The position numbers were made by a program, and so were the translations under genes. Positions 1,006-57,200 of a stretch of DNA of 64,000 nucleotides are shown piece after piece. How positions within the stretch are numbered: the stretch's first letter is position 1; each line of letters begins with the position of its first letter. This DNA is from Mytilus californianus (Eukaryota), in contig NW_026262690.1 of assembly GCF_021869535.1 (NCBI RefSeq), positions 52,948,001-53,012,000 of the forward strand, in the 5' to 3' direction. The notes under the pieces were generated by a model, which saw nothing but the letters and a program-made list of their open reading frames with translations, searched no databases and was not told the DNA's origin.

Positions 1006-3992
1006 AATTTAAAGAAGCATTTAAGAACTTCGATAAAAATGGGGATGGGAAAATATCTTGTAAAGAACTAAGGACGTTTCTGAAATCTGTAGGACAAGAT
1101 TCATCTGATGCTGAAGTACAAAGAATAATGATCAGGGTAGATCACGATAGTATGTATAAATTGTTAGAAAAATGAACACAAAACATTTTTTAACGTGTAA
1201 AAGATCTTTTCAGAGTACCTACAGCGTATCAAAGTATGCTCATTTAGTGCGAGGAAAAAGCTACATATGTTTAAAACAGAAAGAGCAAGTATTTTATGAA
1301 CATAACAATATACATGTAATATAAAAAATCTTACTCTGAAGTAGATGAAAACTCAAGTACATTTTTAAAATGACAGATATAATAATACTAAGATTTCAAT
1401 TTCAATGTATTTTGCAGGTAATGTTACCAAAACATAAGATAATTTGATTCTAGGCGAACAGATTTGTGTAATAAAATAATTATCCACTTATTTATTTTTG
1501 GGGGAGGGAGTAACGTTTAGTGACCTTTTGTATCGGCCATTTTGAACCGTACATTATAACTGTAGGTGATTATAGAAACCGAAAATCACTTTGTACAGTT
1601 GTATGCTGTTACAGTTTCATAGTCAGCTTTTGAAATAAAATTCATATAATATTTGAGGAAAAAAACATTATTACGATAAAAAAAAAAGAGGACAATAAAA
1701 TAAGTTTAACAATGTAAGACAGCACTATGGTCTAAAGACTACAGGCAACATCCAACAAAAACTCAACATAGAGTATAAAAGACTGAGCAATTGGAATCAG
1801 ACCAACTATCGAGGGTTAGCTCGTATACTCTGGTTGCTACACTCTTGCCATTGGTCGTGCTACTAGATAAATTCGATTATTTCATAAATGCTATAAAAAA
1901 AAGGCACCTCCGAAGAATGAACAAAAGGGAAAGTTTTGACGAATATACATAGTTATAAGTCAGTAATATATAAGGATAGAAAACAAACTACGACTTATGA
2001 AAAAAAACCCAGACATTTTGAATATAACAAAACTGAAAACTAAACCAAAAGGAACGTGAACCCCCATACAATGGTGGGTAATACTTACGCACCGAAATTG
2101 TAAACAGTTCCTGCTCTTCTAATGGAACCTGTTGTGTTACACATAACAGGTAAAATTCCGGTGACCAAACCGAATTGGCGATAAGTTATAAAATAGGCAA
2201 TGATAATCAGACTTATAGCCACGACACATAAATGGTACAAATATAACAAAGATCATATTGGACACAGATATTCCGTAGCGATTAATTGAGTCATGACGAC
2301 GTAAACTTAAAACGATTGGCTTATTGGGAAGTTTAATGCAACCCACTGCACATATTGCATAATTGTATATGCGTGTAAAATTTGTAACTGGAACCGTTGA
2401 TGAATTGATTGTCACTGTATTTAAGTGTTAAGCTATAAATGACCTTGTTCATTCTGAATATATTTCATAATTACCAATATATTTGTACAATTGATGACAA
2501 AGCTAAAGTATAAGTTACAGAAAGTTTTACATTGTTTTCGGTTTTGAAAAGTAAAAATACATTTCGTAGAGAATTCAATTGTAATCAGATGTCTTAATTA
2601 TTCCAACTTGTATTGTTTTACAAATAAAAATTGAGTATAACTTAATACAAATACGTTTTTTAAAGATAGTGGTTCCATAGAATTTCAAGAGTTCTTGACA
2701 ATGATGTCGACGGAAGAAACAGAAAAATCCCCAGCAACAACCGATCAATTCCGTGACGCATTTCGAGAATTTGACAAGGATGGCAATGGAGTTATAACTA
2801 TGAAAGAATTTAAGAAAGCTATGGCTAAAGTAGGAAATAAACTATCGGATAAACAAATCAAACAAATGATCAAAGAAGTTGATCTTGATGGTGATGGTGA
2901 AATCAATTATAAAGGTATATGATCAATGGGAATTTAATATGATCATAACATCATATTCAATTTTCACATCTATATAAAAAGTTGGACTTTTTACCAATCC
3001 CTCGACAATAACAATTTACAGGTTAATACGCCTGCAAATTAAAATTTTTCCAATGAAATATGATTACATTTGTAGTAGGGCTAAACACTTAACAATTTCA
3101 TTTTCTAATTACGGAGATGACTTCCATGTGTGTTTGGGTTGTGGACTGGACTTTTAATTACATATACATGTAGATGTCAACCCCCTCTTTACTTGAACCT
3201 CGGTCGGTATACTACCCACAGGTACACACAAGAACATGCAATAAAATCCGTACAGGTGAAGCACTAAATTCAAACCACGGTATAATAAAAGTTAGCATAT
3301 TCAAACTCAAATACAAACATTATAAACAATCTACATAAAATCGTAAGAATGCTCGATGTTATTGAAAGTAAGCTCTAAGCACTTAATCTGTTGATACGAA
3401 TTTATGCTAACCTACACTAAACATTTTTTAATATAAATTCATCAGTATCAAATTGTTTGAATGTTCTCCATTCAATATATGGTCCACGTGTTCGTTGCCC
3501 CGCCCCCTTAGTTTAAAAAGGGATCAATATATGGTCCACGTGTTCGTTGCCCCGCCCCCTTTGTTTAAAAAGGGAAGAATATACCAAGAGGGCAATAAAA
3601 ACACGAGTCGTACAAAACAGAAAACTGAAGAAAAAATGATGAAAAAAAAATAAATATTGAGCAGCATACATGAGGAACGATTATGTGTTAAACAGCAATC
3701 AATCCATTCGACATTTAAATATACACTAACACATACACCCTTAGTAATGTGTACATCATTACGTGTGTGCATATCCAAATGCATATATCAATCTGAGTAA
3801 TTTTCTACGAATATATTAGAAATATTATCAACTGACAATTGATATATATATACTATCATGATTATCATATTCAAACTCGAATACCATCTACTTGGCAAAT
3901 GGAACTATTTTTGAGTTTATTTCTACTCGAAAATGTAACTTAATCATCATGTTATCTTAATTTCAGAATTCGTCCAAATGATGTCAAAGTAA
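1006..3992 (+). CDS. Calmodulin-like EF-hand gene 1, 5'-partial; exons 1006-1149, 2666-2914, 3967-3992
   Basis: AG/GT-bounded phase-1 exons (tacag|1006, 1149|gtatgt, aaag|2666, 2914|gtatat, tttcag|3967) join in frame. Product: (E)FKEAFKNFDKNGDGKISCKELRTFLKSVGQDSSDAEVQRIMIRVDHDNSGSIEFQEFLTMMSTEETEKSPATTDQFRDAFREFDKDGNGVITMKEFKKAMAKVGNKLSDKQIKQMIKEVDLDGDGEINYKEFVQMMSK*. Four EF loops; the 144-nt exon matches the calmodulin exon size. Start exon(s) not recognised in the window. Confidence 0.9.
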
Positions 3993-5018
3993 ACTGCGAC
4001 CAAGTTGCTGTTGAGAGATTAGCTCATAAGTAATGACATTTACCATATGCCCTACGAGGTGTGTTGTATTCAGCATTTGTAAACCATAATTAGTGTTTTA
4101 TTTTGCTTTGCATAAGACTACGTAAATGGAATTTAAATGCAAGAAGTGGTTCATTTACATGCCACTATAGTATAGTTTAAATATGTACTTATCTAAAATA
4201 TGCGCATTCAAGGATACAGATTAGTAAAAGTACATGTAGGTCATTAATGTAATCTCAAAAGCATATGTTTTATATAAAATGCATATGGAGAAAAAAATAA
4301 GACAATTGTAAACAATTTGTAGTCTTAGACCTTGTACACATATATTTTACTTTTTTATTTTACACATGTTGTTCTAAACAGGTTGTACTTTGAGGCATTA
4401 GCATCAGTATCATAAAGCGTATACATGTATATGTTACATTGCCTACTACTGTTAAATACAAATATAAAAACCAATGTGTATTTCCAAATAAATACCAAAA
4501 ATGCAGTTGTTCAGTTATTTACGCACGTACCGAGTCTGAAAGACACACATGATTTACCAGCAGAACAGATTTGTAATATAAAAAGATTTTAACAATCAAT
4601 GTACATGTTATCCTCCATATTGACAAACACTAGAAAGTAATGATACAGCTTTATAAAAAACCTCAATGCACCATGAACACTACATTGACTAAAATGTTTA
4701 TAACTTTAAAAGTTCAAAAAGAGATAGGCTGTCCATAAGATATGATAAATTAACAAAGTTCAAGAAGCCTTAATTTTTGTAATAAAACATTACTAAGATA
4801 AGATATTAAGATAATTTTATTGGTTCAAAATCCAAAATTATAGGATTGTTACCAAGACAATAAACATTGACTATACATAAACATACAAACATAATCTGAC
4901 CACATTTATAAACATTATATATATAACTGTATATCCCCTCCATTATTAAAAGAAAATATTGTTAAAATAATAAATGAATGTATATAATCTCTGCTGAGGA
5001 GGTGGTACCACAAAGTTA

Positions 5019-5255
5019 TTAAGTACTCAATAAAGCATTTCTAGAATTACACATGGTGCTTATGAATTTTACAATAATTTTAATTATATCAGTCTCACCA
5101 CAGGTATACAAAAATTTAAATCTTGCTTCATTAGTCATATTTAAAAAAGAGGGAACTATTTCACTAATTTTGGAAAATAATTGTTCTCTAATTGTATTTA
5201 GTTTTGTACATATTATAGTGAAATGAAATTCATTACTAAGAAAAACAAGTTCTGG
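5019..5255 (-). mobile_element. 3' fragment of a non-LTR retrotransposon ORF2 (RTE-X/CR1-like C-terminus)
   Basis: NEFHFTIICTKLNTIREQLFSKI resembles the E-x-E-x-HF-x2-C-x5-R C-terminal motif of LINE ORF2 proteins. Confidence 0.55.
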
Positions 5256-5931
5256 CAATATGTACCATCTGTTTATATCTATGCTATGCCTGTTATTCAG
5301 TGGAAGTCGTGTGTTGCTATATATATCATATTTGTTTTTTCGTTTATTATCTAGTACATAAATCGGGTCGTTAGTTTTCTTGTTTGAATTGTTTTACATT
5401 TTGTCGAGTCCCTTCATAGCTTCCTATGTGGAGGTATGGGTTTGATTAATTGTTGAAGCCCGTACGGTCCCCTATAGTTTCTTACTTTTACGTCATTTTG
5501 GTCTTTAGTGGAGAATTGTCTCATTGCCAATCATACCACATTTTTCTTGTTTTTATATCAGAACATAAAAAAGATTTTGCTGGAATATCGTAAGAAGAGT
5601 TAACGGTAACGCATTAGTAGGCAAACGATTTGTCTTTTAATCAAGTTCCACATAAACAAAAGTTCCATAGTTCTTAATTGACATTTTTAATGCTGAAGAT
5701 TGTACTAAAAATACAGCTTTATAAAATATTAACTTAAATAAATCGCATCATACTAATACGTATAGGTCAGACAAATGAATACTTGGCTACGCCTTGGGTT
5801 TTAATATTCATAAAACATGACCAAGTATTGACTAACCTATACCTATAAAAGGTTTATTATTATCTCCACTCAGTAGCGATCTAATAGTTTTAAAACATAT
5901 CATCAATGAAATGTTTATTATATTTTATTGT

Positions 5932-6416
5932 GTTTCCTATCATGATTTCCTTGATAGAGGATTGCTGCTCACAAGGAAGCTATTAAACCAAGAGTTCCGA
6001 ATGGTGAGGTTGAAGTCATCCCTTCGTAAATTTTACGGACGCCATCACGAGTTGGTTGACCGTTATGGAATAACCGTTTCACAGATGATATCGGATATGT
6101 TCCTTATGTCGTAACTACAATACCCTCCCTTTTCACGAATGTGACTTACCGAATTAGACTATTTACCGGATTTGTAATAAAATAAGCAACACGACGGGTG
6201 CCGCATGTGGAGCAGGATCTGCTTACCCTTCCGGAGCACCTGAGATCACCCCCAGTTTTTGGTGGGGTTCGTGTTGCTTAGTCTTTGGTTTTCTATGTTC
6301 TGTCATCTGTACTATTATTTGTCTGTTTGTCTTTTTATTTTTGGCCATGGCGTTGTCAGTTTGTTCTCGATCTATGAGTTTGACTGTCCCTCTGGTATCT
6401 TTCGTCCCTCTTTTAT
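5932..6416 (+). mobile_element. Penelope-like retroelement 3' fragment (RT C-terminus plus 3' tail)
   Basis: YHDFLDRGLLLTRKLLNQEFRMVRLKSSLRKFYGRHHELVDRYG, followed by the tail gcttacccttccggagcacctgag...ttcgtccctctttt. The tail recurs at ~13940-14150, ~17320-17520, and in reverse at ~12130-12290 and ~32030-32230. Confidence 0.7.
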
Positions 6417-6925
6417 ACAATAAATGACTATGTTAATAAAATGTACAACATAGGGCGTTATAAAATACATTTATTAGCATTCTTTGAAGTAATAGAATGA
6501 ATCACCATTCCGTTTTTAAATGATTTTAATATGAAAGGATATTGTCCGAGATTACTCTGACGTCCAACGGCTGTTTTGTCAGACAAGCTATGGCCGTGGG
6601 TCCGGCCCCATCTTGTCTGGCAAAACAGCCGTTGGACGTTAGAGTAATCTCGGACTAGAAAGGAAAATGTGTAAGAAGATACCAAGGGTACAATACATAG
6701 ACAATAAATAGGATTATCGCACCGCGGGTAAATTATTACGTTGTGACTGGTTTAACGCCGTCACGTGGTGACCCCCTATGGATCCGTAGGGGGTTAGTAA
6801 ATTTCATAGTGGGTTCATGACGTCATGTCTACTGTTAATGGTGACGTCATGTATTGATGTTGTTGTATTTCATTGTTTATTTTTCTACAAAACGCTGCAG
6901 AAAAAGTCTCGCGTACGATAAATTC

Positions 6926-7294: not shown

Positions 7295-8106
7295 TGTCAC
7301 AGTGCTCCAATCGTTTCAAATCAATGGCTGTTTTTTGTCAGTAAGTTGACAGGCAATTTTGACCATGTGTTTTGTACCTACCTATCTTTGATTATTGGAT
7401 GCAGTACTAATTGTAAGGTATGTTTTTGCAAGATATTTGGCAGTTTTTTATTTCTTTAATTATAAAAAAATGAAAACAACACATTATAAATAATTGAAAA
7501 ATCAATATTGCTTAAAAGAGGACATTTTTTTCTGCAAGATACGTGTTTGGCACTACAAAATGAGAATTCTTCATTTACAACGAGCGTGAATACTCCAAAA
7601 GAGGGACAAAAGATACCAAATGGACATTCAAACTCATAAGTCGAAATGCGCCACGGATTGTAGTAGTGAACCTTCATTTATGACGTATTACATATTGACT
7701 TGTCACAGTGCTCCAATCGTTTCAAATCAATGGCTGTTTTTTGTCAGTAAGTTGACAGGCAATTTTGACCATGTGTTTTGTACCTACCTATCTTTGATTA
7801 TTGGATGCAGTACTAATTGTAAGGTATGTTTTTGCAAGATATTTGGCAGTTTTTTATTTCTTTAATTATAAAAAAATGAAAACAACACATTATAAATAAT
7901 TGAAAAATCAATATTGCTTAAAAGAGGACATTTTTTCTGCAAGATACGTGTTTGGCACTACGAAATGAGAATTCTTCATTTACAACGAGCGTGAATACTC
8001 CAAAAGAGGGACGAAAGATACCAAATGGACATTCAAACTCATAAGTCGAAATATGCCACGGATTGTAGTAGTGAACCTTCATTTATGACGTATTACATAT
8101 TGACTT
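7295..8106. repeat. Near-perfect 406-bp tandem duplication (7295-7700 / 7701-8106)
   Basis: The copies differ by about 4 substitutions and one T in a T-run. Confidence 0.95.
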
Positions 8107-9127
8107 GGTTCTGTTGCTTGTAGCCTAGCACGTTTAACCTCCTATACGTGTCGGTTTAGTACCGAAGCAGGATATAATCTTAGGATATTTATAACCTTAT
8201 CATTGTCCTCAGTATTCATTCAATATTCGACACTCCACTTTAATCAAGTCAGGAATATGACAGTTGTTTTCCATTCGTTTGATGTGTTTGAGCTTTTGAT
8301 TTTGCCATTTGATAAGGGACTTTCCGTTTTGAATTTTCCTTGGAGTTCGGTATTTTTGTTATTTTACTTTTTACACAGCCAACAAACACACAAAATAAAA
8401 AAGAAACTTATGCAAAATTATGAGGATACTGACTTTGCAAATATACTTTGAAATTCTGATATTTTCAATAAAATATTACAAAATACATCAGCACTTCCTA
8501 TGGTCACTTTATTTTCAAGATAAACATTAAACATTTTCTAATTCGTTTTGAATAGATTGTTTTATACAATTGAAAAAGGGTGACCATAGAGCATATTAGG
8601 CTGGTGGTAACGAGTGTTACATTGTATACATGTAGGCATTTTCATTCGTATAAATAACATAGTTACATTTTCAATATGTTAAATAACTACAGAAAGTTGG
8701 GATGAAAAGGGAGGGGTTGTTTTGTTGTTGCTCACAGCAAAATTAATATGGACATTCAAATATCGAAGAGTGTAGCATAAGGGCTAAATGGGTCATCGGC
8801 AGAGTATTACATTCGCAAATATAATGCCCCTAATATACTAAAGTGCACAGCATTGGTTTCATTTAAAAGCCTTGATGATCTAATATGAATAAAAGGTGAT
8901 GTGGGAAATTACGTCAATGAGACAACAATCCAACAAAATAAAAACGAAAAGGCATCTAAATATTTGTAAAAACATTTTTGATTAAAGGTGCTTTTGGTGC
9001 CATGTAGCTTTTATCTTAGTGAAGGTGTTCCGTAAAAATCGGCACATTATGTTGCTTATGATAAAAATATTTCATTTTCATCATGAAATAACTCAGTTGT
9101 TATGAATGTTCTTCCGTGTACCCGCAC

Positions 9128-21530: not shown

Positions 21531-22121
21531 CAGTATAATTGAGTGTAATAAATTTTTTGAATACTGTTTAATCGGTACAAACATTGATTTTGTTACTTAA
21601 TTAAGTAGTATTACTATACAGCTATGAACATTAACGATACTACATTCTGTCGATACTTATATTTTGACTTTGCATAAGATCGTGTTTTTCTCTGACTGTT
21701 TATGACGATTTAAATTAAATCCTTTGCATGTGTACCTTATTGATATTTTAGTGTTGAATAGATAATTTTTTATTAGATGTAATTAACTTTGAACTAGCTT
21801 TCAAAGTCTTTCTTCTGTTGTTTTTTTTTTGGTATTTTTGTTGGTTTTTATAGTTTTATATTATGTCACATTCTGCATGTGCCCATCCAAAGTGATCAGA
21901 AGCCTGTAATTTCAGTGGTTGTCGTTTGATGTTGTATATCAAATTTGTTTTTCGTTTATTATCTTGTACATAAATCAGACAGTTAGTTTTCTTGTTTAAA
22001 TTGTTTTACATTTGTCTTGTCGTGGCCTTCTATAGCTAGCTATGCAGTATGGGTTTTGCTCATTGTTAGAGGAAGTACGGTGACCTATAAATGATAGATT
22101 TTCCGTCATTTGGTGGAAATC

Positions 22122-27000: not shown

Positions 27001-27311
27001 CATAGTGGATCTTAAACTTAATATCCCCAAATCTGTACAAAAGCATTTTAGAGGAGGTCATACATACAATTCTGTCAATTATTTTTGTTTTGATCAGGAC
27101 CTGTCTGTAATTGAATACTGAGAATTAAACCTTTAAGCAGCAGTTTATTGAAATATATTGATTTAATGCGCACTATAAATATTATATCATGATAAAATTC
27201 CACAAATCTGGATTTTTCATAGATAGGATCTTTTTGCCAGTGTGTGACCTATCAAGAGTATGATCAATACATCTATTTTGCGATTCATATTTTCAATTAA
27301 CCGTCCACTCC

Positions 27312-30300
27312 TACGGAAGCCGATAAGGGCCATTAAAAAAAAAAAATTATGTCGTAATTACGACATAGCATGTCGTAATTTCGACATAACATGTCGTTAT
27401 AACGACATCGCTATGTCGTAATTTCGACATAACATGTCGTTATAACGACATCGCTATGTCGTAATTTCGACATAACATGTCGTTATTTCGATATCACTAT
27501 GTCGTAATAACGACATAGCTATGTCGTAATAACGACATCGCTATATATATATATAAGAATATGTATTATGATTGCCAAGAGACTTAATGACACAGAAATT
27601 AACAACTATAAGTCATCATAATGCCCTCAATAATGAGAAAAGCCCCCGCATAGTCAGCTATAAAAGAGGGACTAAAGATACCAGAGGGAGAGTCCCCGAC
27701 ATGACAGCTGTTTAACAATTTAATTCAAACGAGTGAAAATAACGGTTTTAATAATGTACAAACAAAGACCGGAAAACGAATATGTAACACAGCAACAAAT
27801 GACAACCACTGAATTACAGACTCCTGACCGCTATGTGATAATAACGGCAACCTTATAGTTAAACTTTTCACTTTTTGATGCGATAGGCATTTCAAAATGG
27901 TTGTCAGTAAAGGCAAAGTTTGTAGCGGAAACAAATTTATCTTTTCTTTTTTTTTAGAATAATGAACACTATATGCAATCAAGCTTAATTAAAGTTATTC
28001 ACTTGCACCTCAGACTTGCACATACTAGAACTTTATTTATAATCAAGTCAAATGAGACCCAGTTGAATAGGGGAGCAATTCAAGCTCCTTGGAGCCTCTT
28101 ATTATGTTTGGCATGTACAGATTTGTGTAAATTATGAAGTCCTGCATTTCCATTGCAGGTTCTGAATAAGATGAATTTTAAGCTTTTCCCAATAAAGACT
28201 ATGTTAAACTTTGGACTCATAGTGCTCAGACCCACGGATCTCTGTACCTTCATTTGTACACACTTGAATCTTAATGTACAGTAACTCCTGAGGCTTGATG
28301 CAAATTATTACTGCATTGCTATTGTTGGTTCTTAATGAGATTCTTCAAGCGTCCTCCCCATTGAAGCCCTATTAAAACTTTGTACCCCAAGTTCTTTTAA
28401 CCACTTTTCCCCAGGGCAACTATTCCTACAAACTTAAGGGGAGGGTTAGGATCCCGCTAACATGTTTAACCCCGCCACATTCTTTATGTATGTGTATGTC
28501 CCAAGTCTTTAATTTACATATTTGTTTTTCGTTTATTTTTGTACATAAATTAGACCGCTAGTTTTTCTCGTTTGAATTGTATTACATTTGTCATTTCGGA
28601 GACTTTTATAGCTGAATATGCGGTATGGGCTGTGATCATTGTTGAAGGCCGTACGGTGACTTTAATTGTAAATTTCTGTGTCATTTGGTTTCTTGTTGAG
28701 AGTTGCGTTTTTGAACAAACCAGCGTATCCCAAGGCCTTGATAACCTCTGTAGGCCCCAAATAAGACGAAAAAAACATCAAAATTGGAGAGAAAACTGAA
28801 AAAAATGGTTTCTAACCTCAGGGATATTAACCCTTGGCTATCTTAGATTTAATGCAATCAGTATGCATCAGCATCAGCATCAGCATTTGCATATCATTTG
28901 CATATTTTTACAAATACACGAAATTTAGACAATTTCTGATAACAATTCAGCATGCCAAGGGTTAATATCCCTGAGGTTAGAAACCATTTATTTTCAGTTT
29001 TCTCTCCAATTTTGATGTTTTTTCGTCTTATTTGGGGCCTACAGAGGTTATCAAGGCTTTGGGATACGCTGGTTTGTTCATAAACGCAACTCTCCACAAG
29101 AAACAAAATGACACAGAAATTAACAATTATAGGTAACCGTACGGCCTTCAACAATGATCACAGCCCATACCGCATAGTCAGCTATAAAAGGCCCCGAAAT
29201 GACAAATGTAATACAATTCAAACGAGAAAAACTAGCGGCCTATTTCATGTACAAAAATAAACGAAAAACAAATATGTAAATTAAAGACTTGGGACAGACA
29301 CATAAATTAAGAATGTGGCGGGGTTAAACATGTTAGCGGGATCCCAACACTCCCTCTAAGTTTGTAGAAATAGTTGTCCTGGGGAACAGTGGTTAAAAGA
29401 ACTTGGGGTACAAAGTTTAAATAGGGCTTCAATGGGGAGGACGCTTGAAGAATCTCATTAAGAACAAACAATAGCAATGCAGTTATAATTTGCATCAAGC
29501 CTCAGTAGTACATTAAGATTCAAGTGATTACAAATGAAGGTGCAGAGATCCGTGGGTCTGAGCACTATGAGTCCAAAGTTTAACATAGTCTTTATTGGGA
29601 AAAGCTTAAAATTCATCTTATTCAGAACCTGCAATGCCAAACATAATTAGAGGCTCCAGGGAGCTTGAATTGCTCCCCTATTCAACTGGGTCTCATTTGA
29701 CTTGATTATAAATAAAGTTCTAGTATGTGCAAGTCTGAGGTGCTAGTGAATAACTTTAATTAAGCTTGATTGCATAAAGTGTTCAATATTCTCAAAAAAA
29801 AAAGATGAATTTATTTACGATACAAACTTTGCCTTTACTGGCGACCATTTTGAAATTCCTATCGCTTCAAAAAGTGAAAAGTTAAACTATAAGGTTGTCG
29901 TTATTATCACATAGCGGTCAGGAGTCTGTAATTTAGTGGTTGTCATTTGTTGCTGTGTTACATATTCGTGTTTCGGTCTTTATTTGTACATTATTAAAAC
30001 CGTTATTTTCACTCGTTTGAATTAAATTGTTAAACAGCTGTCATTTCGGGGACTCTCCCTCTTGTATCTTTCGTCCCTCTTTTATAGATGACTATGCGGG
30101 GGCTTTTCTCATTATTGAGGGCATTATGATGACTTATAGTTGTTAATTTCTGTGTCATTTAGTCTCTTGGCAATCATAATACATATTCTTTTATATATAT
30201 AGCGATGTCGTTATTACGACATAGCTATGTCGTAATTACGACATAGTGTTGTCGTAATTACGACTTGTTATGTCGAAATTACGACATAGCGATGTCGTTA

Positions 30301-30495
30301 TAACGACATGTTATGTCGAAATTACGACATAGCGATGTCGTTATAACGACATGTTATGTCGAAATTACGACATAGCGATGTCGTAATAACGACATGTTAT
30401 GTCGAAATTACGACATAGTGATGTCGTTATTACGTCATGTTATGTCGTAATTACGACATAAAATTTTTTTTGAATGGCCCTTATCGGCTTCCGTA
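27312..30495. mobile_element. Fold-back non-autonomous DNA transposon, IS3EU-like ends, 3184 bp; arms 27312-28838 and 28954-30495, 115-bp spacer
   Basis: Ends TACGGAAGCCGATAAGGGCC...GGCCCTTATCGGCTTCCGTA. Direct repeat CACTCC at 27306-27311 and 30496-30501 (6-bp TSD). The arms are reverse complements along their length; no coding capacity seen. Confidence 0.85.
27347..27545. repeat. Subterminal tandem array of palindromic TGTCGTAATTACGACA-type units (left arm; mirrored at ~30200-30460)
   Basis: About 43-bp repeats made of two self-complementary 16-mers; more copies in the right arm than in the left. Confidence 0.85.
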
Positions 30496-33400
30496 CACTC
30501 CCTATTGGCATTGACGTCTTTTAATCAAGGTGGGGCTTTGACTGCCAAGATTCAAATCATTTGCCTCACCAGAAATAAAATTTAAGTTACGCTACTGTCG
30601 ATTGATTGATAGTTGGTTGCTTAACGTCCAGTGGCAAATATTTCATGCATAATTAACGTGTAGAGAGCGTGACATTCTCTCTACAAGAGGCATCCGATTT
30701 AACGTCCCCACTCTGACCGAACGGGACTGTGTACTTGTACATCCCGCACAACCAAACGGACTCCCCACTTTGGCAATGGTTTAACTGCCGATCGGAACAA
30801 GACCAATAGTGACTATATTTTTATTCCCCCGATCACCTTTGAGTGGTTACTGTCGAGGCGAGCGCGCGACCAAAGAGACAGTTATGAATATGGAAGATAC
30901 ATGTACATGTACGTGTATTAATCAAAACATTTGCAACAAGAATGTGTGGCCTTAAGACACCGTGCCCCTTCACATGATCATATTTCCATGTTCAGTGCAC
31001 CACTTAATCCGGGTCAAACTCTAATTTGGTATATAATTTTAAACGTTTTATATTTTGAACAAAACAGAAGAACGGACGGATGCACAGACCAGTAAATATA
31101 ATATCCCCTTGCTATCATTCATAAGTTGGTCCTAAAACTAAAATGATCATCCTACTTAACAAAACTTCAATCAAATATTCCGTACATATCCGTTTTTCAT
31201 ACGTATTTGTATAAGTTAAACGCCAAACATTTTAGAATAACAATTTAAGAGCACTGACGTTAAATTACGCATACGTTTTTACGGGCTCTTCCTAGAATCC
31301 ATGCATCATTATAATTAAAGACAAGATATAACAAAAAATTAACTGATTCAGTAAAGTGTAATCATATTTTTTCTTGAAGATGCTTCCTCATAAATTCCAT
31401 TTGATAAAATTCTACGGAAAGGTGACAAAGTACTATCAGAAAGATGCATCAGTGATCTGAATTTTTACCTTTGACAAAAGTATCTTGAAATAAATTATAG
31501 AAGTATGCTATGAAAAAAAAGAAGAAAGTCGTGTACACCTTTTAACTTCCGGCATGTTTGAAACTCTTGTTTTAATCTTATATCTTTTAAATCAAAAATG
31601 AGAATATGATCTCGCTTCAGATTCCATTATTTTTATTTTTTCAAAATTCATTTTGATTTAGTATCTTTTAGAATTCATCGTTTGAGGGATAAGTATATGG
31701 GTCAAGTGAAATGACGAAGTAATGATCGGTGCATTTGATTACCGGTAACTGTAATGAATTATGAATTAATTATTCCCTTTAAAGGTTGTTGTCAATGAAA
31801 TAATCCCAAATTTAATAACAAAATATGTAAAGAATTGAAAAAGTAGTTGGTGCTAATTTCTAAATAGCATCGATTCCAACAAAGTATGTGTATTCAACGA
31901 GCCAAAAATTCATGCAGTTTATGCTCCCCTCCGTCATCCTTCAATGCAATAGGCCGAGATACGGTCAGATAGGTTGGTTATGTCGAGTAATGTCATTTTA
32001 TTGGAAATCTCTATTAGGTTATAAATGTATCGCAAAAAGAGGTAGAAGATAGCAAAGGGCAATCAACACTCATAAATTAAGACAAATTGACAACGTCATG
32101 GCAAAAAAGAAAGACCACGAAAAGATTAACAAGTTAACAAAAATAAAAATTAAACTGAGCATCACGACCCCCACCAAAAACGTGGGGGATCTCTGGTGAA
32201 CCGGATGGGTAGGTAAATCCTGTTCTGCTAGTGGGACCCGCCGCGTTACTTATGGTAAGTACAATCCATGAAAAGAATACGGAATTGTGCGATAGAGGAA
32301 AACAGTGCAGGCATGTGACTACGAAAAGAGACACTACAAGCCCTGAAATATCGTATCAACTGGAAATATAATTGAAGGTTCTATAGGCAAAAACAAAGAG
32401 GGAACAGATACTAAGGAAGCGATCGAAAATCGTACGTCGAAAAAATAACACACAACATCATAACAAAAATGAAAATTGAAGAGAGAAAAACAATTGCCCA
32501 CACTACACAGAATTAAAAGACTGAGCAACACGAACCAAACCAAACAGGGGGATGAACACATAAATGTTGATTCAAATACTTAAAACTATTACTTACTTTT
32601 AGAATTTTGAACTTGGCAAATTACTGAAGTTTATTCAAGCAATTTTTTTTTCTGAATCTGTGTTTGCTCTACTTACATCTTGACTTCTTAGTCTGTTAGA
32701 AATACACATCTGCTGAAGAAAATTAAAGTCAATAATTCATTTCACGTTTCTATCATATTTTTATGAAAACTGAATATTTAGTACAGTGGAGTTTTCATGT
32801 TTGTATTTCCTTCCCTTTTATATATATAAAACTGAGGGGGTGGACAGCTTTTGAGGGAGGTGGGAGGGGGGCGGGAGGTGGGAGACAAAAAATAGGTGGG
32901 GGAGAAAAAAATATTCTAAAAGTGGGAGGTGAGAGATAGGGGCGGGAGGTGGGAGAAGGGTACCCCCTGTCCACCCCCTCATAACTATCTCAATCATCTA
33001 TATAACAGTAACGGTGCCAATTTTCTGCACCAGATGCGCAGTTCGACAATAAATATCTCTTCAGTGATGCTCGAGTCTAAACTATTTGAAAATCAAAAAC
33101 TTATTGAAAAAAAGAAGAGCTTATAAATGACAAAAAGTAAAACCAAAGCCGGCCAAGGAACCAAAGCCGGCCAAGGAACCAAAGCTTTACATGAGAGAGA
33201 TACACTTAATTAAAATATTCCTTAATTTCAAAATAATTTTCACAAAATTTTGTAACAGAAACGTTTGTATGTTGTGTTAAATTTTATGCAAATTATAATT
33301 TGTGCAGATTCTTTGCACGAGTTTTAAGTATTTTGCGAACCTCTTATTTTGGTTTCACTTGTGTCATATGTGCATGACTACACAATACGGTCTCGCACAT

Positions 33401-53344: not shown

Positions 53345-53740
53345 GATTTTTATAGTTCGTTCCTGTGTTGTACTGTTACACCACTGTCCCAGGTAAGGAT
53401 CCTGCTAACATGTTAAACCCCGCCACATTCTGTATGTATGTGCACGTGCCTGTCCTAAGTCAGGAGCCTGTAATTCAGTGGTTGTCGTTTGTTTATGTGT
53501 TACATATTTGTTTTTCGTTCATTTTTTGTACATAAATTAGGCCGTTAGTTTTCTTGCTTGAATTGTTTTACAATTGTCATTTCAGGGCCTTTTAGAGCCG
53601 ACTATGCGGTATCGGCTTTGCTCATTGTTGAAGGCCGTACAGTGACCTATAGTTGTTAATTTCTGTTTCATTTGGTCTCTTGTGGAGAGTTGTCTCATCA
53701 TGCTCATTGGCTATCATACCACATCTTCTTTTTTATATAG
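53345..53740 (+). repeat. Dispersed repeat family B copy; others at ~5270-5560, 16170-16490 (reverse), 21890-22110, 28440-28710, 45370-45540 (reverse), 55720-56075, 56680-56840
   Basis: Shared core gaaggccgtacggtgacctatagttgttaatttctgtgtcatttggtctcttgtggagagttgtctcattggcaatcatacc. Confidence 0.8.
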
Positions 53741-54297: not shown

Positions 54298-57200
54298 TTA
54301 ATCATCTTGTACTTCTAATAAAGCCATATCAAGATCTTCGAAGTATTCATAGGCAGACAAATTGTAGTCTTCAGTATTTCTATCTGATACAGCAGAATCT
54401 TCTTGCTCCTCAACAACTTGTTCTGACAGAAATAACTTCTCAAGAGGTAACATATCACAGGATTCACAATTACAAGACTTAGCACACAAGTCACAGCATG
54501 AATGTTTCCTGCTTTCTTTCTTCATCAAATCATCCAAGTCTGAATTTCTGAGGAAATTACACATCAGATCCTTTCTCCTACAATCTTTAGCTTTAAGAAT
54601 TGCCTTAACTTCCGGTTTCAACTTCTGCAAGTGGTATCCATTGTATAGGATAATGGCAACTGATGGATTTCCATCACTCCCCACTCGCCCTATTTCTTGC
54701 AGCAAATCTACCAGATTATTTTGAGGTCCAAATAATACCACTCCACTACACAAACCCATTCCCAGGGCACTGGTTGACAAAATAAGTCTCAAAACACTAC
54801 TTTCCTCCTTCAATGCATTAATTATAATGTTTTTGTTAACATCTGGAGTTTCAGAATGGAACATCTCAATATACTTGGCACAATGTGGCAAATCTGTTAC
54901 AATGTATTTATAAGGTTTGGAAGTGTCATTTATCGATGAATAATACAAAAGTGTACGTGGGAAGTCCTGTCTTTTTTCCTCTTATGCATCTACTGACCAT
55001 GTCATTCCCATTTCAATTTCATTTTTAATTTTGGAAGATACTAGTTTAATATTAGACTTGTTTGGTGATAAATTAATTTCTGTTGTGTCCTCCCCTAGCT
55101 GTAATATTTTCATGAGTTTTTTCCTAAAGCTTACATTGCAAGTTGCACTTAAAGCCAATACTGTAGCATCGGGAAAGAGGGATCTTAGTTCACCTACATT
55201 TGAAAACCATTTTCGGAAAGCCTCTTTTCTGTCTCCTTCATCTTGGCCCCTGAAAGAAAAATAGAAATAAGTACATCTATAAAAACTTTTATAAAAGGTA
55301 AATATCAGCACCTCTTGCCTAGTTTGTTAATTCTTATGGCAAAACAAAAATAAATACATGTATGTGCATGTCCATATTGTTATGTAACAGCCTATCATTC
55401 AGTGGTTGTTGTTGGTTGCTGTCTAGCACATTTGTTTATGGTGTTATTTTTCATACATTCTTATAATTACATTGTAATGGTTCAACATTTTGCAAGTAGT
55501 GGTCTTAAAAGAGCTTACTTTTTAGTATTAGGTTATCTCGTTCTTGAAAGCTGTACAGTTCTGTACCAGTGGTCTTAATTTTTTACTTCTATATTTTTGA
55601 AAATCTAAAATTCATAAAAATGGGAAGGGAGTACACATCAATATATAGAAACAATTCATCAAAGTTTCATGCAAATTCGTTGAATAGTTTTTGAGTTACT
55701 GTCTGACATGTTGACGATTGACAGACAGTCACAGGTTAGGGGAGGGTTGGGATCCCGCTAACATGTTTAACCCTGCCACATTCTGTATAGTGCCTGTCCC
55801 AAGTCAGGAGCCTGTAATTCAGTAGTTGTCATTTGTTTATGTGTTACATATTTGTTTTTCATTCATTTTTTGTGCATAAATAAGGCCGTTTGTTTTCTCG
55901 TTTGAATTGTTTTACATTGTCATTTTGGGGCCTTTGATAGCTGACTGTGCGGTATGGGCTTTGCTCATTGTTGAAGGCCGTACGGTGACCTATTATAGTT
56001 ATTTATTTCTGTGTCATTTGGTCTCTTGTGGAGAGTTGTCTCATTGGCAATCCTACCACTATTCTTTTTTATATAGACAACGGTATACCATAATACGTCC
56101 TGTAGATGTGCGAATAGAAATGAACATGGGGAATAAACATTGTATCCACTTACCAAATTGCTATTGTGTGAAACTCATCAATTACAATCAACTTAATGTT
56201 CAACTTCTTTAAACAAGTTCTCCAATAGGGATCACCAACCAATGTTTCTGGAGATGCAAAAATGACATCTATCAACCCCTCTTTGATTCGATCGTCACTC
56301 TGGGGGGGATGATCCTAAAATGCAAAAAAAAATGTAGGTGGGCAGTCTCCAAAAAGACATATTTCTATGATAACTTCTATAATTTAAATGTACACAAAAA
56401 TGTACACTGTACAAATACCCTTTATCCATTTCACTGCGTTTGATTCAAGATTGAAATCCAATGAAATAATTCTTATTGTTGTAAAGTCCAATACAGAAAT
56501 GAATCTAGCTGAGATTTCAATGAATGCATGGCATATTTTCTCGATTTTGAGATGTTTCTGCCAATTTACCTGTTTGGCCATCCAACAAGGTCATTTAGAC
56601 TGCACTTTTTCATATTTTTCTTTTATTTTTTCATTGTTTAACACAGATAACAATCTAATTTAAAAATTAAGTTTCCCGCACGTTTCTGGGCCATGTAAAG
56701 CTGACTATGCTGTATGATTTTGCTCATTGTTGAAGGTCAGATGGTGACCTATCGTTGTAAACTTTGTCATTTGTTGTCTGGTGGAGAGTCGAGTTGGCAA
56801 TTATAGTCTTGTACATGTACGACATCTTCTTATTTTTATATGCATGTATATTTGTTTTGAGATAGATTATTAGTACATGTAATTAACAACATTTCCCTTG
56901 GACTCTGGTGCTTCATTAATACAACATGTAGTATATATCTTTATACAAAGTATGAAGAACTAGCATTATGGCCAAAACGACTGTAAAATACTGGCAATAT
57001 GACCGATACAATCTGTTCTCGGTGAAATGAGACAAATTTATGTGCTACCATGGCTACGATCTACTGCTTCTGCAGTTTTTTTTAACTTTGCTCATGTATA
57101 TCTAAGTTTCATATTACTGCTTTGTTACTGTTAGTCATGTGTATGTGTTGATATACTGAAGTTTAAATGTATGTTCCTGCAAATAAATTTTATTTTATTT

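Follow-up and report, generated by a model that had tools for sequence, protein, structure and literature searches.

A non-autonomous fold-back element family with IS3EU-type ends in Mytilus californianus and its likely autonomous partner

A 64-kb window of the Mytilus californianus genome (contig NW_026262690.1, positions 52,948,001 to 53,012,000) contains a palindrome of about 3.2 kb whose termini resemble those of IS3EU DNA transposons. This locus raises the question of whether such a structure is real, whether it is mobile, how its two arms came to mirror each other and which enzyme could move it. IS3EU ranks among the most poorly studied groups of eukaryotic DNA transposons. The structure and the function of IS3EU elements are largely unexplored (PMC11934779, 2025). 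The analysis presented here favours, with a probability of roughly 0.85, a non-autonomous fold-back family of IS3EU, in which an inverted duplication would have occurred once in the founder, followed by the spread to about 250 copies mobilised in trans by the aspartate-aspartate-glutamate (DDE) transposase of a 10,070-bp partner element. Unless a contig label is given, coordinates are positions within the window.

Structure of the fold-back element

The element proper was delimited to positions 27312-30495 (3184 bp, with TAC...GTA ends) by inverted-repeat search, direct reading and self-BLAST. An earlier interpretation made without database searches (the sequence-only reading) had placed it at 27306-30501, coordinates which take in the 6-bp target-site duplication CACTCC. 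Its description of an almost full-length palindrome, the sizes of the arms and of the spacer, the termini and the duplication were all recovered. The element begins with TACGGAAGCCGATAAGGGCCATT, and its last bases are the exact reverse complement, which corresponds to perfect terminal inverted repeats of 23 bp. A spacer of 115 bp separates the left arm, 1527 bp long (27312-28838), from the right arm of 1542 bp (28954-30495). The arms of the window copy aligned in two blocks with 94.9% and 94.5% identity, split by a stretch of 36-37 bp (28115-28150) present in the left arm only, where a block of about 40 bp lacking a right-arm counterpart had been noticed before.

Inside each end, a run of A is followed by a tandem array with a unit of 43 bp (2 x 21.5 bp). 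Every half-unit of the array contains the 18-bp palindrome ATGTCG-N6-CGACAT; the left array has 9 copies of it, the right array 12. In the remaining 60.8 kb of the window, this motif gave three loose matches, approximately the number expected by chance. The scan of the element for open reading frames revealed nothing longer than 86 amino acids, and the tRNA search of the element found none. Rfam matches in the element were all far below the gathering scores and were hairpin look-alikes of the motif array; RNA genes were therefore rejected. With its 3184 bp, the element does not correspond to a miniature inverted-repeat transposable element, a term applied to short non-autonomous elements under about 800 bp.

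Genomic copies, target-site duplications and empty sites

The genome (1.65 Gb in 175 contigs) was searched for the 23-bp terminus, which was found 249 times in forward and 253 times in reverse orientation (502 in total), while a control pattern gave no match. The size of the family is thus about 250 copies. Among the first 100 places listed, about two thirds of the end pairs were spaced by 3.0-3.5 kb and about one quarter by 1.6-2.7 kb; one pair was 10,070 bp apart. Perfect 6-bp duplications were detected in 20 of the 23 end pairs of 30 fetched loci and in eight of nine further pairs analysed around the termini, that is, in 28 out of 32. All 28 duplicated hexamers are distinct, and they are AT-rich (29% GC), mostly at the four central positions. 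The termini TAC...GTA were observed in nearly all end pairs, the exceptions being loci L002 (GTG) and L003 (GTT), in which the last base is altered. The search for copies with the same ends, as proposed in the sequence-only reading, yielded a large family with independent duplications.

A genome search for the junction between the left arm and the spacer gave 124 matches, split roughly evenly between the strands. Long palindromes are a recognised artefact of long-read data in general, and an artefact of the assembly or of chimeric reads had to be considered for the present one as well; nothing specific was found in favour of it. The arms show indels and a sequence difference of 5%, approximately 124 loci share an identical arm-spacer junction, independent copies display different 6-bp duplications, and the spacer with the adjoining arm sequence was recovered in contigs of other samples and organisms (in a third organism with 96-98% identity, depending on how gaps are counted). 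All these data make an artefact practically negligible, and the fold-back is a real mobile element.

The repeat in which the window copy is inserted (27090-27305, resuming at 30502-30600) is present in a few hundred copies that are 92-96% alike. At least 15 uninterrupted paralogs of this repeat represent empty sites: matches of the left and of the right flank overlap by exactly 6 bp, where a single hexamer is present. DNA contigs from two organisms also displayed a joint from 27305 to 30496, with six letters fitting both sides. Since the flank is repeated and the contigs may be paralogs, no polymorphism is claimed for the window locus.

An autonomous partner encoding a DDE transposase

The end pair with the widest spacing delimits an element of 10,070 bp on another chromosome (C13:17932515-17942584), whose 23-bp ends are identical to those of the fold-back. 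This candidate partner was analysed over its first 8.5 kb (locus L061). Its left end carries the same run of A as the fold-back and an identical first motif, followed by 18 motif copies over about 410 bp. The partner is flanked by TCGGTG and TCGATG, a duplication with one mismatch; a pattern search combining the right terminus with the left-flank hexamer gave a sole genomic match, at the expected place.

The transposase gene was the only recognisable gene in the analysed part of the partner. It consists of exon 1 (3673-4482 of the locus, donor GTAAGT) and exon 2 (6298-6624, acceptor TTTCAG). Script translation of the joined exons gave 378 codons without any internal stop, and 369 of the 378 residues are identical to an uncharacterized protein of Mytilus edulis (P0001). 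Exon 1 and P0001 were used as queries in the protein searches. The transposase matched the integrase core domain PF24764 of Pfam (E = 6e-31), while the match to an N-terminal helix-turn-helix was weak. Homologues were identified in bivalves, fishes, beetles and a sea urchin, and the alignment of twelve homologues revealed D132, D191 and E224 as invariant. Upstream of the first catalytic aspartate (residue 132), only one nearly invariant histidine and one nearly invariant cysteine were observed (H80 and C83). Core blocks of the partner protein (VWH.D.YDKLK = VWHIDGYDKLKP..., GTEN and NQRIE) match the printed Repbase cores of IS3EU-1_DR and IS3EU-1_CGi (PMC10045372, supplement). The Danio homologue (P0099), with 51% identity to the partner protein, also shares the blocks of the printed IS3EU-1_DR core, as judged by eye. 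The search by sequence for a solved structure gave no match. In the genome, the transposase is present in one copy at the level of 97% identity, with related copies at 87% and 75%.

Many further IS3EU-like transposase lineages were encountered in the genome with 35-52% identity to the partner protein (e.g. C57:15332347, C99:31137214 and C165:6357205), several of which display open frames of about 290-400 amino acids and near-identical copies. These suggest that further, possibly active, IS3EU families are present. The intron and the 3' region of the partner locus include pieces of other dispersed repeats (5250-5312, 7428-7831 and 8235-8365), which make up a small part of the 10 kb and recur in the window at about 38.1-38.3, 42.9-43.5, 48.6-48.8 and 60.9-61.5 kb.

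Assignment to IS3EU and comparison with known systems

In every complete IS3EU family the termini are TA..TA, the duplications usually measure 6 bp, and IS3EU and GingerRoot belong to a single lineage (PMC10045372, Kojima and Bao, 2023). GingerRoot elements also have TA..TA ends and 6-bp duplications and carry captured gene fragments (PMC6839031). The family described here shows the same combination: TAC...GTA termini, terminal inverted repeats and 6-bp duplications in 28 of 32 end pairs, together with a partner whose integrase-like DDE transposase (PF24764, D132/D191/E224 and the core motifs) lacks an upstream HHCC motif and has its first catalytic aspartate at residue 132, within the 100-300 residues from the N-terminus typical of this lineage. 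The family was filed under IS3EU (IS3EU/GingerRoot) because the core of the partner matches curated IS3EU cores and because the rule on ends and duplications fits; membership is supported at the level of sequence comparison. The IS3EU signature recognised in the sequence-only reading was thereby confirmed for ends and duplications, and extended by a same-ended partner with an IS3EU-like transposase. The arms of the fold-back carry apparently foreign DNA, as GingerRoot does with its gene fragments. In contrast, the reported inverted repeats of GingerRoot are 100-150 bp long versus 1.5 kb per arm here (about 96% of the element), and its duplications are GC-rich, whereas the hexamers found here are AT-rich. 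Among the papers searched, none was found to describe an IS3EU element with subterminal arrays of palindromic 18-mers or a fold-back non-autonomous family of this superfamily.

Other integrase-type groups with duplications of about 6 bp, namely Ginger2/TDD and Polinton, were considered as well. They share the length of the duplication, but their termini are TG..CA or AG..TC (PMC6839031) and not TA..TA. Polinton/Maverick elements are 15-20 kb long and carry a DNA polymerase gene, whereas the partner measures 10 kb and no polymerase or other Polinton gene is present in the element. Together with the match of the partner core to printed IS3EU cores, this makes an assignment to one of these groups very unlikely.

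In shape, the element recalls the Drosophila FB elements and Galileo (P superfamily), whose inverted arms are very long and bear tandem repeats near the ends; most of their copies are non-coding, and they are mobilised in trans. FB and Galileo belong to other transposase superfamilies and produce duplications of 7-9 bp; Foldback elements of the Drosophila type have arms of tandem repeats, a duplication of about 9 bp and a partner related to MULE. The element described here is likewise non-coding, with very long inverted arms and tandem subterminal repeats. However, its duplication is 6 bp long, its partner is of IS3EU type, and the tandem array covers only about 200-260 bp per arm; unlike those of FB and Galileo, the arms are mainly made of unique DNA and fragments of another repeat. 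The element is therefore FB-like in shape without being a member of FB. It belongs to known kinds, non-autonomous IS3EU and fold-back transposons, and is not categorically new.

Composition of the arms

Each arm contains two fragments of one dispersed repeat (M1 and M2, Table 1), which are inverted relative to each other and 80-92% like other copies of this repeat in the window. With 5918 first-look candidates (initial match counts in the genome) and a very high depth in all DNA runs, the repeat is far commoner than the fold-back family. The inner fragment M2 is shorter than the genomic copies of the repeat, as indicated by a loose-end consensus at 29087 in the reads. The 604 bp located between both fragments gave 462 first-look candidates, close to two for every copy of the family. 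This core, the innermost 133 bp and the spacer appear to exist solely in the fold-back family, and about 740 bp of each arm are family-specific DNA. The sequence-only reading, according to which the arms are composed of common dispersed repeats, is correct for the two mirrored modules of each arm; these account for only about one third of the arm, and the 604-bp core and the inner 133 bp are family-specific. The window also contains, at 53390-53692, 55736-56038, 21896-22114 and 5327-5518, copies of a dispersed repeat which is about 300 bp long, gives thousands of first-look candidates and has left fragments in both arms.

Comparison of the fold-back interior with the first 8.5 kb of the partner showed no similarity beyond the ends and the arrays, in agreement with the previous proposal that the arm interiors are foreign to the element. 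No donor locus was identified for the arm interior, and captured host DNA is its likely source.

The sequence-only reading had also considered the palindrome as a source of long double-stranded RNA. Raw reads from one RNA sequencing run (about 6% of the run was read) give no support to this idea so far: the family-specific segments were essentially without reads, and reads on both strands were obtained for the abundant repeat fragments of the arms.

Table 1. Features of the fold-back element and its insertion site in the window
Feature	Position	Strand	Evidence
Host repeat hit by the insertion	27090..27305, resumes 30502-30600	.	296 and 239 first-look candidates
Left copy of the target-site duplication, CACTCC	27306..27311	.	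direct reading; at empty sites in paralogs the two flank matches share exactly 6 bp
Left 23-bp terminal inverted repeat, TACGGAAGCCGATAAGGGCCATT	27312..27334	+	249 forward and 253 reverse genome matches versus 0 for the control
Left subterminal array, 9 x ATGTCG-N6-CGACAT, period about 21.5 bp (43-bp double unit)	27348..27544	.	
M1, outer fragment of the very abundant dispersed repeat	27559..27830	-	high read depth
Family-specific arm core, including the left-arm-only block 28115-28150	27831..28434	.	462 first-look candidates
M2, inner fragment of the repeat that also gave M1, in the opposite orientation, 3' end shortened	28435..28705	+	loose-end consensus at 29087
Innermost part of the left arm	28706..28838	.	
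Spacer of 115 bp, asymmetric, including a short run of CATCAG	28839..28953	+	orientation relative to the arms constant in all copies
Interior of the right arm, mirroring 27545-28838 minus the 37-bp block; M2' 29087-29359, M1' 29917-30169	28954..30198	.	
Right subterminal array, 12 motif copies (6.1 units of 43 bp)	30199..30460	.	
Right 23-bp terminal inverted repeat	30473..30495	-	
Right copy of the target-site duplication, CACTCC	30496..30501	.	

Age of the family and divergence of the arms

Twenty full copies were compared after orientation by arm-specific differences. Their identity is 98.0-98.9% with the consensus and 97.6% among themselves. Two pairs of copies (L014/L016 and L010/L011) are 99.7% identical and differ in their flanks and duplications, and it follows that the family has moved recently. 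Between the arms of the consensus, identity amounts to 96.0% in the outer and 97.1% in the inner part, and the consensus contains the 37-bp block of the left arm, which was found once per copy in 19 of the 20 copies (no match in L029). At 29 arm-diagnostic substitutions, both arm states were kept in 479 of 580 cells (83%). Since the consensus arms differ and the diagnostic states are kept, the palindrome must have been present in the founder, with arms already 3-4% diverged before the spread. The fold-back, which could have been taken for a feature of this single locus, is by this comparison ancestral to the whole family: it was formed a single time, and the spread to about 250 copies came later.

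The arms of individual copies are 92-96% identical, less than the 96-97% of the consensus. This is the relation expected if the arms decayed independently, and by the sequence comparison they appear to have done so for the most part. The opposite explanation, that the likeness of the arms is upheld by continuing arm-to-arm gene conversion within copies (concerted evolution), draws on contiguous conversion tracts in L029 (18 sites), L006 (9 sites), L004 and L019. Arm-to-arm conversion does occur, though it is not the rule: tracts were seen in about four of the 20 copies, and with both arm states retained in the large majority of diagnostic cells, conversion is not what keeps the arms alike. Concerted evolution is consequently an improbable explanation. 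An apparent flip-flop of the centre between copies, with the 37-bp block and the spacer seemingly exchanged, was rejected as a result of the orientation chosen in the search; all four arm segments turn together.

The shorter elements which were examined are deletion derivatives. A copy of 2557 bp without the inner left arm results from an internal deletion. Another of 1573 bp, consisting of one arm and the other end, was considered as a non-palindromic precursor and rejected: at 23 of the 26 diagnostic sites its state is that of the right arm, from which it derives by deletion.

Origin of the founder and mobilisation in trans

The founder would have derived from a half-element made of a terminus and a motif array joined to unrelated DNA of about 1.3 kb, in which two dispersed-repeat fragments were already present. 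Duplication of this half-element in inverted orientation, once and around a short loop, would have generated the arms of 1.5 kb, possibly by fold-back priming at a break or by template switching at a fork (PMC7467729, PMC10766183). Inversions of this kind also consist of an inverted duplication around a short asymmetric spacer (here 115 bp). They serve as an analogy only for the founder, and the short priming repeat is no longer recognisable here. Inverted duplication of a half-element is the most likely origin. A divergence of 3-4% between the arms would have followed, and only afterwards would the family have expanded to about 250 copies, some of which are very recent.

In the main rival explanation, the founder goes back to a non-palindromic precursor of about 1.6 kb: two of its copies, already different in sequence, would have fused head to head, and the transposase would have used the two outer ends thereafter. 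Such a fusion could account for the difference of 3-4% between the consensus arms, for the 37-bp block and for the unequal number of array units, and side-by-side inverted copies do occur in the genome. On the other hand, neither inner termini nor motif arrays are present near the centre, and the only single-arm element examined (1573 bp) has, with its right-arm states at 23 of 26 sites, the appearance of a deletion derivative. A fusion is thus regarded as unlikely, though it is the alternative to be taken most seriously.

Returning to the fold-back family itself, its mobilisation in trans by the transposase of the partner, or by that of a close relative, is most likely in view of 23-bp ends that are identical and motif arrays that occur in both elements. 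In the 8.5 kb compared, these are the only sequences common to both elements, and the transposase probably recognises the 23-bp ends together with the adjoining arrays of the 18-bp motif. The N-terminal helix-turn-helix would bind the palindromic 18-mers, which a site spacing of about two helical turns would place on one face of the helix. After binding, the enzyme would cleave the DNA at the TA ends and integrate the 3.2-kb unit with a 6-bp stagger. The palindrome itself may favour the extrusion of hairpins or cruciforms and thereby deletion, a scenario that fits the many shortened derivatives.

Several observations weigh against this reading. The mobilisation by the partner on C13 is deduced from shared ends only, and its subterminal array is only about 78% like that of the fold-back. 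The transposase relatives at 87% and 75% could be the real source. The interior was compared with the first 8.5 kb of the partner, and the last 1.57 kb may hold sequence homologous to it. Finally, the empty-site joints in the reads possibly represent paralogs and not alleles.

A further proposal, considered possible and rather doubtful, is that the fold-back family and the single intact partner constitute a currently active two-component IS3EU system in Mytilus, with the 23-bp end and the phased arrays of 18-bp palindromes as shared cis elements. If true, this would define the cis-requirements for a superfamily whose mechanism is unstudied and provide a natural substrate for a first transposition assay. 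As a natural pair, one apparently intact autonomous element and about 250 young non-autonomous copies point to likely binding sites of the transposase, and they indicate that a near-perfect palindrome of 3 kb can be propagated by an IS3EU-type enzyme. For genome annotation, the family explains why mussel assemblies contain a number of long inverted repeats, along with versions shortened by deletion; these are real and not assembly errors.

Composite and rearranged copies

At four loci (C88:109.07 Mb, C24:7.13 Mb, C35:18.67 Mb and C88:118.89 Mb, corresponding to L008, L013/L030, L014/L026 and L018/L024), two neighbouring fold-backs are inverted relative to each other. In L008 and L013, the flank of the terminus is the hexamer CCAAGA of the outer repeat module (M1-like), which could reflect a preference for nested insertion or local hopping. 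Locus L062 (C1:104253000-104260300) harbours a complete fold-back flanked by TTGATC and, 5.1 kb further, an extra single arm ending with TTGATC; fragments of reverse-transcriptase open reading frames lie in between. This is a local rearrangement or duplication involving the element.

In L027, an extra GTA is located between the right end and a duplication matching at 5 of 6 positions. In L015, two termini are abutted at a distance of 3 bp (CCGTA-TTC-TACGG, 4779-4800 of the locus, C88:4681974-4682002) in a composite of a 3286-bp and a 674-bp copy, with GAAAGA as left flank and GTA+GAAAGA as right flank. Abutted ends were rejected as a general feature, the junction of L015 being the sole one genome-wide. 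By analogy, this single case resembles the end-to-end intermediate of IS3-type elements and hints at a similar step here.

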